A DNA stretch of 63,800 nt, the filler included, from Reticulomyxa filosa (Eukaryota > Protista > Foraminifera), in NCBI GenBank assembly GCA_000512085.1. It is 23 parts of 23 records of this genome, joined end to end, with 100 filler letters (N's around TTAATTAATTAA, not from the genome) between each part and the next. Parts side by side here need not be neighbours in the genome. Positions count along the whole stretch, not along the records: positions 15,831 to 20,333 come from ASPP01021728.1; 22 more parts are not named here. The stretch is one strand, 5' to 3'. The notes beneath the pieces were generated by a model, which did no database searches, was not told the origin of the DNA, and worked only from the letters and a program-made list of their open reading frames with translations. Every line of letters begins with the position of its first letter. The first letter of the stretch is position 1. The translations under genes and the position numbers were made by a program. Positions 15,731 through 20,433 of this stretch are shown piece by piece.

Positions 15731-16602
15731 NNNNNNNNNNNNNNNNNNNNNNNNNNNNNNNNNNNNNNNNNNNNTTAATTAATTAANNNNNNNNNNNNNN
15801 NNNNNNNNNNNNNNNNNNNNNNNNNNNNNNTATCGTACGGTGTTCTGAAGAGAAAAAATTATTTGAATAAAAATATAATATTTGATTTGATTACCATTTT
15901 GTTTGTTTTTATTGTTTATAGGTAGCAAAAATGTTTGATCCAACAAATGAGCATTCGCAAAAGAAATGTTGTGGTGCGAAAAAAGGTGCGTGATTTTGTT
16001 TTGATATGTAATTTTCTTTGTCTACGTTAATTCAATGAAGAACATTTAGCGCATTGAACCTAGTGATATGACCTCTTTCTGATTTTTTTTAAGAAATAAA
16101 AATCCTGACAAAAAACAAATTTAACCAAAGTTATTTTGTTGAAAATTATAGAAATGTATCGATGAAAATGACCTGCAAATTGTTAAAATATCAAAAAGAT
16201 TGACAGTCCGTAATTATTGTACAAACTCAGAAGTGAATCAGTCCTCTTGGGGATCGGACAGTTTCGAATTTAAAATGTAAATAACAACTTCAAGCCGAAA
16301 CAAATTGTGCAGGACTTTTAAACTTATTGAAAAAAATAAAAAAGGAATAGTATTTATCTCTTTTGGTTTATACTTTTTGGATTGCGTTTTTTCATAAACA
16401 TCAGAAGCCAGGTTAAAATCAATTAACTAAAATTTTTTCATGCCTTCCTAATGCTTTTATACCCGAACATTACCTTTTTTTAGGGAGGGTAAAACTCGTC
16501 AAGCCAAAAAAACTAAAACAGTTGTGCATTGTACACAAATCACAAATTCGAGAACTGCCAACAATAACAAAAAAAATCATCATACAAGTGTTGTTTACAG
16601 TG

Positions 16603-17745
16603 TCAGCATCCACAATTGAAATAGGAAGTAGAATTATTTTGTGTTTTTTCTGCTTCACGTTCAGCCAATATTTGCAGGTTCAATCCTTTTCCACTGTACC
16701 TGCTTGCAGTGTTTTGCATACGAGAATCAGTGCTATTTGCACTTTTGGTATTTTTATCAATATTCTGTTCATTGGTATTTTTGATATTGGCAACATCAGT
16801 GATCGTGAATCGATTTTCTTCCGATGAAGATTGGTTTATTCCACTTGCCTTGTAGATTAATTCCAAAAATGCCTTTTCGACGTTCGTGCCATCCAAGGCA
16901 CTTGTTTGATAGAACAACATACCTTTTTTAAAAAAAGAGGACACGTTTACTGCGATAATCGCAAAATTCAATCGATCTACGTATACATACATGTACAAAA
17001 TACGTACCATAGTGATCTGCAAAACTCTTGGCTGCAATCATATTGACAGACGTGCCAAAAGGTTTGGTACTAGACCGTGGCATTTTGACGTCGCCAATAC
17101 CATGGATACTCATGTTATCATCTTCGGAGTCACTGGCATCACCACTGTCATCGCCCGTGTTGCCTCCTGTAGTCTCCTCCGATCCTTTTTGCGTCGATTT
17201 TTTGGTATTTTTGTGCGTTGTTTTTTGTTGTTTGTCTTCGTTTATGGGCTTGTTTATATTTGCTCCCTTCGGTCTGTTGCTTGCTGTTTTGACCATTGTC
17301 ACCGTTGGTGTCAGTGTGGGAATACGTGGGCTTAATAAATCGCATTTGTTTCCACAAAGCAAGAATGGAAACGTTTTGGGATCAAAAGAACCGAAATCGT
17401 GAATAAAATGATTTCGCCAAGCTCCTATATTTCGAAAGGATGATTCGTTGGTACAATCAAATACCAGCACACATGCATCTGCGCCCCGGAAAAATGCACT
17501 TCCCAACGATAAATGACGCTCTTGTCCGGCTGTGTCCCAAACCTGTACATTAATGCCTCCTGTATCCGTACCTGTTTGGCTCCCTCCTATTCCATTGCTT
17601 GATATTGTGTATGATATAAAATCACACCCAATTGTTGGTTTGTGAATTTGGTCAAACGGTTTCCTGCAAAAGAATTTAATAGCGCCGTTTTTCCAACTCC
17701 ACTATCACCCAACACGATTATTTTCAACATGGTATTAGGTTGCAT
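16603..17745 (-). CDS. Rab7-like small GTPase with a large insertion
   Basis: GDSGVGKT, PTIGCDF, WDTAGQE, SLGSAFFRGADACVLVFD, FPFLLCGNKCD, QTSAL and C-terminal CGC. Intron at 17007-16923; one 1-nt slip near 17660. Confidence 0.9.
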
Positions 17746-18709
17746 TCACTATTTCTTTTTTTATTGATAATAATCAACTGCAAAATTACTGAAATTTTGT
17801 CCTTTATTCCCTTTCATGTCATGTTTGTTGCTTTTCGTTCTTTTTTTAAAAAAAAACTTTGCATAGAGATATTTGATAACCACTTAGTTGTTTACAATCT
17901 GATAGCTATTGACTTTAGTAATGTCAAGAAAACAAGTACATAACATTGCAGATTTTAAGCAAGATCATCGTAAAGGCTCAGCATTTAATTAATAAAAAAA
18001 TAAACCAAAAAATCAACACTAAGCAAAAAAATAAACAAAAGTAAAGCATACTCACCAACTTTGAATAAACTTAACATGAGATTAATTTTTTTAAGATATA
18101 TAAAGTAGTTGAATTAGTTTGAAAAAGAATAACATGGCCGGTTGCGATGGCAGAAGATAATTTTTTCAATCAAAGCAAATTAATTTTGTTTATAGAAATA
18201 ATTGAAAATATAAAATAATAAGCAAATTAATTTCGAACGTACACAAAAATTAAAGAGAACATAAGACAGCGAAAAAGTGAAAAAAGAAAAGATTGTATTC
18301 GGTTAAAATGATTGCCCTTTTGGGCGATTCAACAAAAAACAAAAGAATTTAAATAAAGTGCCGCTAATATGAAAAGTATATTGACAAAACTTGACATAAT
18401 ATACAACCGCCGCAAAAAAAACTTATGTTTGTTGTAGAGTGATTTCCATATTTTCTTTCAAAACTATTTAACGGCATTCTTTTTTAAGAAAAGGTAAATC
18501 TTATTGTCGAGTAAAAAATGATTTTGCAACTGAACATTACATGTATTTTTTTATTTGAATTTTAATCAGTTTTAACTTTTATGCAAATTACGGTCATTTG
18601 TGATGTACTTTCTATTTATTGAACGTTTGATCAAATTGAAAATAAGGATTAGAGGAAGTTTGCAAATAAAGCAAAACATTATCTTACAAAATTCGTTTTA
18701 CAGTCCCTT

Positions 18710-19615
18710 TTATGAACGAGAGCGTTTATGCCACAATTCAACAGCTTCCTGAATTTGTGGCTCTGGTTTTAAATCTTGGAGTTTGAGTCTGCAACTAGTG
18801 TCGATTGGATCAGTATCGTGGTCACAGAGCCAGGTCTCAATCATATTTTTTTCGTACACCCTTCCTTGCGGAGTGACGACAGCAGTTTGGAAAATATCTT
18901 GCGAAAGTGGACAGATCAAGTAATCTGGAGGAGTGAGTCCATTGTGTTGGAACATTGTCTCTGTGTCTTTTTGGGTAATGGTATTGGACTCTTTCATATC
19001 ATGTGAATTATGGCGGTTGGTCAATAAGTTTTGTACACTCAAAAAATCGACTTTTTCTTCGTCGTATATACTTTGTCCAGAGCTGTGAAAAATATTGAAA
19101 GATCCACGTACTGCTCCAACGTGCGTATTAGTGTCCAACATACGATGGTACTTTCCTCCAATGTTGGAGCCACATTCCGGACACTTTCCTAACTCCACTG
19201 GAATGCGGCACTCTCCAATCACGTACAAGTGTCCATTTGGACAGGTATACCAATCACAATTACCAAACATCTCTTTCAGGCTTTGCATTGTTGTTTTTTC
19301 TTTTTGTTTTTTTCCAAAACAAGTTTTCCAAATCGGAAATGGATCTTTCAACAGTGATGTTGCATGCTGTAACTCCGACCACCTCTCCAAACATTTTGGC
19401 TTCCATATACTTTCGGCACTTGCGCATTTATGCAAGATTGTGCATATTTGTGACAGTTGGCATATACTTTTCTCGTCTAAGTATTGACATACTTCAATAA
19501 AAAGAGAGATTGATTCTTGTTCAAGCGAAGATTTTTCGCTTTCTTTTTTTATTGTGAATCTGTCCGACTCACATTGCATCATGGTTTTGCATAATTTATG
19601 CAACAAACTAGACAT
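18710..19615 (-). CDS. F-box + RZ-type zinc finger + U-box protein (putative E3 ubiquitin ligase)
   Basis: aa ~36-79 F-box-like (FIEVCQYLDEKSICQLSQIC...ESIWKPKC). aa 122-159 WYTCPNGHLYVIGECRIPVELGKCPECGSNIGGKYH. aa ~229-298 PPDYLICPLSQDIFQTAVVTPQGRVYEKNMIETWL...TDP. Confidence 0.88.
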   Translation of the reverse strand: MSSLLHKLCKTMMQCESDRFTIKKESEKSSLEQESISLFIEVCQYLDEKSICQLSQICTILHKCASAESIWKPKCLERWSELQHATSLLKDPFPIWKTCFGKKQKEKTTMQSLKEMFGNCDWYTCPNGHLYVIGECRIPVELGKCPECGSNIGGKYHRMLDTNTHVGAVRGSFNIFHSSGQSIYDEEKVDFLSVQNLLTNRHNSHDMKESNTITQKDTETMFQHNGLTPPDYLICPLSQDIFQTAVVTPQGRVYEKNMIETWLCDHDTDPIDTSCRLKLQDLKPEPQIQEAVELWHKRSRS

Positions 19616-19885
19616 GCTTTGGACGAGTTTTTATGCGTTGCCCCCATTAGAGGAAAAAGCTGGACAAAAGAAGCGAAAACTTGCGCCGCTATAATACAAA
19701 ATACTTGAACAAATTCTACTTAAAACTAGAGAAATAAGTTTGGAATTGCAATAGTATTTTTTTTTGGTCGAAAACGAAAATACAGAGTTTTGTGAGATAG
19801 ACATAGAACAACGAGAAATTTCCAAACTTTCCTTTTTTTTTTTTTTTTTTTTTTTAGTTTTGGTTCTCCCTGCGTAGATATTCTA

Positions 19886-20304
19886 ATGGCAAGCGATAAA
19901 AAAGAGGTAACGTTTATATGCTTGACATTTCTTGCCAATAACTTACTTTTGTTTGTTTGTTTGTTTTGCTCAGACTGAAAAGAAAAAAAGTAAACTGGAC
20001 GTTAACGTGAAAGAACTTGATGATTGGATAGAGATATTATACAAGTGTGAACCTTTACCAGAAGCAGCAGTTGCTAAATTATGTGCAAAAGCAAGAGCTC
20101 TTTTAATTGAAGAGAAGAATGTGCAACATGTGAAATGTCCTGTAACTGTTAAGTATTGATATTTTTATTTTTATTTATTTATTTTAAAAAAAATGAATGA
20201 ATTTTTATTTAAAAAAGGTTTGCGGAGATATACATGGTCAATTTCATGATTTAATGGAATTGTTTAGAATAGGTGGACAACCACCTGATACAAATTATCT
20301 TTTT
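19886..20304 (+). CDS. Ser/Thr phosphatase PP2A catalytic subunit, 5' part
   Basis: Exons 19886-19906, 19974-20147 and 20218-20304 give ELDDWIE...LCAKAR...[42 protein letters not shown]. Confidence 0.92.
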
Positions 20305-20433
20305 GTTAAGTTATTTATTTAATTTTAATTTAANNNNNNNNNNNNNNNNNNNNNNNNNNNNNNNNNNNNNNNNNNNNTTAATTAATTAANNNNNNNNNNN
20401 NNNNNNNNNNNNNNNNNNNNNNNNNNNNNNNNN

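Follow-up and report, generated by a model that had tools for sequence, protein, structure and literature searches.

Reticulomyxa filosa, a naked foraminiferan of freshwater, carries an open reading frame (ORF) that raises the question of whether the chemistry of the RZ-finger ubiquitin ligases can be contained in a small protein and, if so, how such a protein would operate. The RZ ligases known so far come from two giants, RNF213 (~590 kDa) and ZNFX1 (~220 kDa), and in these giant ligases cryo-EM does not resolve the RZ domain, which is mobile, and the step of ubiquitin transfer has gone unseen (PMC12075652). The original prediction for this ORF was a compact E3 that joins an F-box, an RZ finger and a U-box, an architecture not known from elsewhere, in which the U-box brings ubiquitin to the RZ cysteine.

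Gene and modular architecture

The window, that is, the whole stretch of DNA analysed (63,800 nucleotides), includes a 4503-bp piece (positions 15831-20333; 33% G+C) of contig ASPP01021728.1 from the R. filosa genome assembly GCA_000512085.1 (PMC11864969). The ligase gene, which is also called on this NCBI contig, runs uninterrupted through 301 codons on the minus strand, from the ATG at 19615 to the TAA at 18710. Shuffling the piece 300 times gave longest ORFs of 71 aa on average and 156 aa at most, compared to 301 aa in the real one, and the alignment with the homologue from the foraminiferan Bolivina argentea (EukProt) spans 87% of the length. The proposed intronless ORF is indeed continuous, unlike two related loci in which an intron separates the RZ and U-box exons. 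A Pfam scan of the whole 301-aa protein reported three domains only, namely, F-box-like, RZ and U-box. By sequence, this is a real protein-coding gene of R. filosa, and its product is a compact ubiquitin ligase with three modules that belongs, by its predicted activity, to the transthiolating RZ class. An AlphaFold2 model of the whole protein, based on a family alignment of 33 sequences, has a mean pLDDT of 79.6, and a second model, of aa 25-172, reaches 86.9; both catalytic domains, RZ and U-box, are modelled with high confidence. The gene comprises the following features:

18710..19615 (-), ligase gene: a single exon that encodes all 301 aa and ends with the stop codon
19388..19510 (-), F-box-like domain, aa 36-76 (PF12937): three-helix domain that begins without Leu-Pro
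19289..19387 (-), helical linker, aa 77-109: motifs W-x-E-L and (DPFP)xWK..[YF].RK from family alignments; structural matches cover aa 28-108
19259..19288 (-), amphipathic helix directly N-terminal to the finger, aa 110-119: probably the RZ-domain helix that binds ubiquitin, by the model and by analogy with ZNFX1 and RNF213
19112..19258 (-), beta-sandwich of the RZ finger, aa 120-168 (PF20173)
19241-19243 (-), zinc ligand C125: invariant in 26 sequences
19229-19231 (-), zinc ligand H129: invariant in 26 sequences
19208..19210 (-), codon of C136, predicted nucleophile: equivalent, at identical spacing, to C4462 of mouse and C4516 of human RNF213 and to C1860 of ZNFX1; invariant in the family
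19181-19183 (-), zinc ligand C145: invariant in 26 sequences
19172-19174 (-), zinc ligand C148: invariant in 26 sequences
19145..19147 (-), codon of H157, predicted general base: equivalent, at identical spacing, to H4483 of mouse and H4537 of human RNF213 and to H1881 of ZNFX1; invariant in the family
18935..19111 (-), spacer, aa 169-227: variable, low-confidence, probably a flexible tether
18719..18934 (-), U-box, aa 228-299 (PF04564)

The RZ finger was called correctly: the ZnF_RZ-type profile PF20173 scores 68 bits against a cut-off of 27 (aa 114-164), and among PDB sequences the nearest matches are RNF213 chains (E 3e-5). Cysteines 125, 136, 145 and 148 and histidines 129 and 157 form exactly the pattern C-x3-H-x6-C-x8-C-x2-C-x8-H, with CPNGH (aa 125-129) and IGG (aa 152-154) at the places claimed. 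The spacing is that of mouse RNF213, where zinc is bound by C4451, H4455, C4471 and C4474, the probe-labelled nucleophile is C4462 and the general base is proposed to be H4483 (PMC12075652), and that of human ZNFX1, with the equivalents C1849, H1853, C1869 and C1872, together with C1860 and H1881 (10.1101/2025.10.14.682297, 10.1101/2025.09.05.674436). From this identity of spacing, C136 is predicted to act as the nucleophile and H157 as the base; the equation of this pair with the catalytic pair of RNF213 was exact. In the family alignment of 26 sequences, Y123, C125, G128, H129, G134, E135, C136, C145, C148, G153, G154, H157 and N163 are invariant, and this conservation argues for catalysis, not merely for a zinc fold.

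Directly ahead of the beta-sandwich strands, the models place a helix at aa 110-117. The corresponding RZ helix of ZNFX1 and RNF213 is predicted to bind the hydrophobic patch of ubiquitin, and the substitution I1835A abolishes the activity of the ZNFX1 RZ domain fragment (10.1101/2025.10.14.682297); the counterpart of I1835 in the R. filosa protein is T109/M110 or L113, depending on gap placement. Residues 84-148 of the model (aa 108-172) superimpose on predicted RZ domains, including ZNFX1-like ones, with rmsd of 2.7-3.1 A. Homology of the F-box to the sequence that precedes the finger in ZNFX1-like proteins was considered and rejected, the similarity being limited to the short helix and the finger.

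The C-terminal U-box likewise stands as predicted, with a PF04564 score of 46.1 bits against a cut-off of 21.4 (aa 230-299). Its closest match among PDB sequences is Legionella LubX (E 2e-13), followed by plant PUB, E4B, CHIP and Prp19, and the model of this domain (pLDDT 92-97) is close in fold to E4B, CHIP and LubX (Foldseek TM 0.85-0.92, by target; rmsd 0.9-1.9 A). There are only three cysteines in aa 228-299 (C235, C264 and C275) and, consequently, no C3HC4 pattern. The C-P-L motif of the domain aligns with C-P-I of the first U-box of LubX, and Thr-Ala occupies the site of the Asp-Pro that is conserved in the relatives. The spacer between the RZ finger and the U-box is modelled with pLDDT of 44-70, falling below 50 at aa 175-178 and 205-215; its length and sequence differ widely among the homologues, and it is here that the intron of the two related loci falls.

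The ligase gene has two recognizable neighbours on the contig. At 19899-20333 on the plus strand lie the first exons of a PP2A catalytic-subunit gene with short AT-rich introns, cut off at the contig end; the exon at 19971-20156 matches residues 5-54 of human PP2A-C (E 4e-12). This gene is divergent from the ligase gene, and the region of ~280 bp between the two contains a run of ~27 T at about 19835-19856. On the minus strand, 16470-17745 is occupied by a Rab/Ras-family GTPase gene with introns, whose called product of 337 aa matches the Pfam domains Ras and Roc; behind the NKxD motif, its ORF pieces encode a long insertion rich in Ser, Asp and Lys, an uncommon feature in small GTPases.

The F-box-like domain and possible Skp1 binding

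Of the three domain calls, that of the N-terminal module was the weakest, and several lines of evidence had to be combined for it. In the whole protein, the F-box-like profile PF12937 scores 22.8 bits (E 7.7e-5, aa 39-76), just under the cut-off of 24.3, whereas the excised segment of aa 33-116 scores 26.1 bits, above the same cut-off. Among the aligned N-termini of 21 relatives, PF12937 is matched in 14 and PF00646 in 9; in full-length relatives, F-box scores reach 31.7 bits, and one of these proteins (P0012) also passes PF00646. A family HMM made from the 21 N-termini produced 20 matches at E <= 0.01 when run against all PDB sequences, every one of them a chain that bears the name of an F-box protein or belongs to a known one. 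The matches are FBXW-type proteins, FBXO3, FBXL5, GID2/SLY1, FBXW7, beta-TrCP, FBXO4 and ECT2L, and the alignments to the FBXO3 and FBXW-type chains extend through the WK motif that follows the F-box.

Structure comparison led to the same group of proteins. A Foldseek search of the N-terminal model against the PDB returned nothing at E <= 0.001, with F-box/WD40 proteins coming first at E 0.04, and therefore an exhaustive search was needed, in which VIA-align compared the model of aa 25-172 with 48,161 representative chains. The top ten chains are all of the F-box type, namely, FBXO3, FBXO31, Cdc4, Fbs2, FBXW8, Elongin A, beta-TrCP (two entries), SLY1 and FBXW7, with Z from 8.0 to 5.1 over aa 28-108, and all come from complexes with an adaptor, Skp1 or Elongin C. 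A Z of ~8 is middling for helical domains, so that the weight of this model-based comparison lies in the uniformity of the top-ten list. An Atlas feature search retrieved F-box clusters only at a low score (0.76), which can be taken as no more than a lead. Taken at the level of the model, the domain displays the three-helix F-box fold with its linker as in Skp1-bound structures. The F-box of the original prediction thus holds, on the evidence of the excised domain, the relatives, the family profile and the fold.

Whether this domain docks on Skp1 is a separate matter. The Leu-Pro motif of the F-box usually contacts Skp1. At the start of helix 1, this motif is absent in all 21 aligned N-termini, where the columns before the I-x-S-F-L-D block are variable. 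Because the family lacks this canonical element, the originally suggested tethering to an SCF complex is something that we infer, and Skp1 binding by the F-box is plausible as judged from sequence.

Relatives and distribution

In the literature searched, we found no description of an RZ finger and an F-box in one protein, or of the F-box-RZ-U-box architecture. The chemistry and each of the single domains are already known, and it is the compact F-box-RZ-(U-box/RING) family that appears to be undescribed. The architecture was also found beyond R. filosa: it is rare, in line with the original prediction, but not unique, with about ten sequences, from foraminifera and environmental samples, sharing it within a wider F-box-RZ family. 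A word-indexed search of 5.8 billion clusters detected seven other proteins, complete RZ plus U-box proteins numbered only five in a profile search, and an exhaustive phmmer search of 1.84 billion representatives yielded 11 matches below 1e-30. Besides the R. filosa protein, the sequences listed with the full architecture are these:

P0002: Bolivina argentea, foraminiferan (EukProt)
P0003: ENA metagenome
P0009: JGI environmental contig
P0011: JGI environmental contig; full length, F-box at 31.7 bits
P0004: JGI environmental contig; N-terminally truncated
P0010: JGI environmental contig; N-terminally truncated
L005: Tara Oceans scaffold; intron between the F-box-RZ exon and the spacer/U-box exon
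L006: Logan assembly contig (SRR32380747); intron position as in L005

In the last two loci, the intron of ~100-120 bp (L005, 3099-3218; L006, 903-1000) lies exactly between the RZ finger and the spacer/U-box part, so that gene callers split these genes into "RZ-only" and "U-box-only" proteins. Protein-database counts of the architecture are, for this reason, too low.

The F-box-RZ core is combined with E2 binders of three forms: a LubX/PUB-like U-box in the R. filosa protein and P0009, both of which have LubX and PUB as the nearest matches; a U-box of the E4A/UFD2 type in P0011, with E 2.6e-16 to human E4A and 26% identity to the R. filosa U-box; and a C3HC4 RING (48 bits) in place of the U-box in P0008. 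Other members of the family end after the RZ finger or carry unrelated tails, and F-box-RZ proteins with neither U-box nor RING are found in Goniomonas pacifica (Cryptista) and Gefionella okellyi (malawimonad); among the relatives, Goniomonas (MMETSP), as well as Gefionella and two others (Trinity), derive from transcriptomes. In a tree of the core (24 rows, P0025 and P0030 having been excluded for their short length), all sequences of the foraminifer-like clade bear a U-box and the backbone is unresolved, so that the topology is equally compatible with one gain of the U-box followed by losses and with several gains. The argument for separate fusions comes from the different U-box types and not from the tree. 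An Atlas shape search found RZ clusters, with no large cluster combining F-box and RZ.

Two further members of the family showed features of their own. The 362-aa F-box-RZ protein P0032 has a Cys-rich C-terminal tail (W-x-C-x2-C-T-F-x-N...C-x2-C) which, by eye, resembles a ubiquitin-binding finger of the RanBP2/NZF kind, Thr-Phe motif included; at E <= 0.01, Pfam reports the RZ finger as the sole domain of this protein. The F-box-RZ homologue P0016 (L003/L004, 4001-4675) belongs to a cluster for which the longest contig on record has 2.66 Mb, and the locus examined lies on 15.8-kb contigs that are very gene-dense, seemingly intronless and of 23-32% G+C, with SIR2, RRM, TerD, DnaJ-like and ankyrin plus F-box genes as neighbours. 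The source is possibly a compact protist genome or a giant virus.

A possible ubiquitin relay and its alternatives

From the domains, the catalytic and zinc-binding residues and their conservation in the family, all of which are observed, we infer a route for ubiquitin that leads from E2 binding to a substrate. The C-terminal U-box would bind a ubiquitin-charged E2, and the flexible spacer of 60 residues would let it reach the RZ domain, whose N-terminal helix would hold ubiquitin; ubiquitin would then pass to C136 as a thioester and from there to the substrate, with H157 serving as the general base. No part other than the F-box and the helical linker behind it is a candidate for a targeting or docking module; most likely, the F-box would bind Skp1, with or without Cul1, and would place the relay on or beside the SCF scaffold. 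Given the sequence features and the analogy with characterized ligases, we consider the chances that the protein works in this way, with ubiquitin relayed from E2 on the U-box through C136 and with the F-box likely docked on Skp1, to be slightly better than even.

The analogy is with ZNFX1, in which ubiquitin passes in cells from UBE2D on the Miz/Z-RING domain to C1860 and then to the substrate (10.1101/2025.10.14.682297, 10.1101/2025.09.05.674436). With transfer from an E2 binder to an RZ cysteine demonstrated there, the "RBR-like relay" suggested for the R. filosa protein becomes a well-founded analogy, and the presence of both ZNFX1-like functions in one chain, across a poorly conserved spacer, makes the relay the likeliest mechanism. 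The strongest support for it in this analysis is the joining of three different E2-binding domains to the RZ core, which points to functional coupling of the RZ finger to an E2 recruiter. Three sequence observations speak against a relay: several members of the family have no E2-binding domain, the RZ finger precedes the E2 binder, which is the reverse of the order in ZNFX1 and RNF213, and the R. filosa U-box has Thr-Ala for Asp-Pro. Against docking on the SCF speak the whole-protein F-box score just below the Pfam cut-off and the family-wide absence of Leu-Pro.

Some of these observations could be accommodated by a protein with two independent ligase activities, in which the U-box acts as an allosteric E3 on lysines and the RZ domain is loaded by an E2 directly or by the Rbx1-bound E2 on an SCF complex. 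F-box-RZ proteins with neither U-box nor RING, as in Goniomonas and Gefionella, are what such an arrangement would lead one to expect, and in vitro the Miz domain and the isolated RZ domain of ZNFX1 are each active alone, so that the relay is not obligatory; in cells, however, ZNFX1 operates mainly as a linear cascade (10.1101/2025.10.14.682297, 10.1101/2025.09.05.674436). Cooperation also explains more easily than independence why the RZ core carries E2 binders of three forms, and we regard two independent activities with no relay as rather improbable. A somewhat more credible alternative, although still an unlikely one, is that the protein is a stand-alone RZ/U-box ligase whose F-box-like helices form a scaffold, a dimerization surface or a substrate-binding element and make no contact with Skp1. 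The missing Leu-Pro in 21 of 21 aligned N-termini, the whole-protein Pfam score under the cut-off, the middling Z of ~8 and the outcome of Foldseek, which on its own gave no significant F-box match, all fit this possibility. It is harder to reconcile with the PDB matches of the family profile, all of which are F-box proteins, with the several relatives that score above the Pfam F-box cut-offs and with a top ten drawn from 48,161 chains that consists entirely of F-box-type proteins solved with Skp1 or Elongin C.

The third possibility is that the RZ finger and the U-box are non-catalytic binders of ubiquitin and E2 in a protein that serves the SCF as a substrate receptor or is itself one of its regulated substrates, or that the gene is decaying and non-functional. 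A binding domain C-terminal to the F-box is the classical layout of F-box proteins, and the R. filosa U-box does deviate at the Asp-Pro position, but C136 and H157, which are not zinc ligands, are invariant in 26 sequences, the ORF is intact over 301 aa where shuffled sequence reached at most 156, and both catalytic domains are modelled at high confidence. This makes the possibility very improbable. The preferred reading is still that of a relay to C136 with the F-box as the docking module.

A natural protein that confines an RZ domain and a tethered E2 binder to 35 kDa would be tractable for crystallography, NMR and the enzymology of the relay from E2 through the RZ domain to the substrate. 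The occurrence of two unrelated types of U-box and a RING on one core provides evidence, by comparison, for joint action of the RZ finger and an E2 recruiter in cis and so supports the mechanism proposed for ZNFX1, and the F-box suggests a previously undescribed link between RZ chemistry and the SCF machinery. The occurrence of the core in distant protist lineages suggests that the RZ finger may predate animal innate immunity. A bolder scenario, which we put forward as a conjecture with a small chance of being right, is that the F-box-RZ core, which occurs in Rhizaria, Cryptista and malawimonads, arose long ago as a transthiolation module for Skp1-Cul1-Rbx1, supplied with ubiquitin by the Rbx1-bound E2 or by its own U-box or RING; it would endow the SCF with RZ chemistry, whose acceptors may be other than lysine or other than protein, as lipid A is for RNF213, and the giant immune ligases of animals would be later elaborations. 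The role in antibacterial defence contemplated in the original prediction is speculation; neither this role nor LPS as a substrate found support in the analysis.

Comparison with known systems places the R. filosa protein apart from each of them. It shares with ZNFX1 the combination of a RING/U-box-like E2 binder and an RZ finger in one chain, the pattern of zinc ligands, Cys and His, and the helix before the beta-sandwich. ZNFX1, however, has ~1900 aa and contains an SF1 helicase and fingers of the NFX1 type, neither of which is found in the R. filosa protein; it has no F-box, and its E2 binder is a one-zinc Miz hybrid located N-terminal of the RZ domain, in contrast to the true U-box located C-terminal of it here. 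RNF213, the nearest solved RZ match with identical spacing of the catalytic Cys and His, has ~5200 aa, responds to ATP as a regulator and uses the CTD, not the RING, for docking of the E2; these parts are absent from the R. filosa protein. Orthology with either giant is ruled out, given that Pfam detects in the 301 aa no SF1 helicase or NFX1 fingers and no dynein-like AAA core, RING or CTD; a real ZNFX1-like match (P0052) carries the AAA_11, AAA_12 and ZNFX1 domains. Cooperation of transthiolating E3s with Skp1 or the F-box/cullin machinery is known for ARIH1 on cullin-RING ligases and for MYCBP2 with FBXO45-Skp1, and their two-step logic, from E2 to a cysteine of the E3 and then to the substrate, is comparable to the proposed RZ relay, but the catalytic domains (RING2 and the tandem-cysteine domain, respectively) are unrelated, and the F-box protein is a separate subunit instead of a part of the same chain. 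Canonical F-box proteins, such as FBXO3, FBXO31, Cdc4, FBXW7 and beta-TrCP, share the three-helix F-box and the helical linker by profile and fold, but the R. filosa protein lacks the Leu-Pro and has, in place of WD40, LRR or any other substrate-binding domain, the ligase modules.

The U-box resembles those of LubX, plant PUB and E4B/CHIP by sequence and fold, with 27-30% identity to LubX. LubX differs in being a bacterial effector, from Legionella pneumophila, with two U-boxes and with no RZ finger or F-box. As the nearest solved relative of the U-box, LubX outranks all eukaryotic U-boxes for both the R. filosa protein and P0009, which fits a protist origin of LubX-type U-boxes. The same homologue search also retrieved a protein of 293 aa (P0034) that contains two LubX/PUB-like U-boxes, as LubX itself does.
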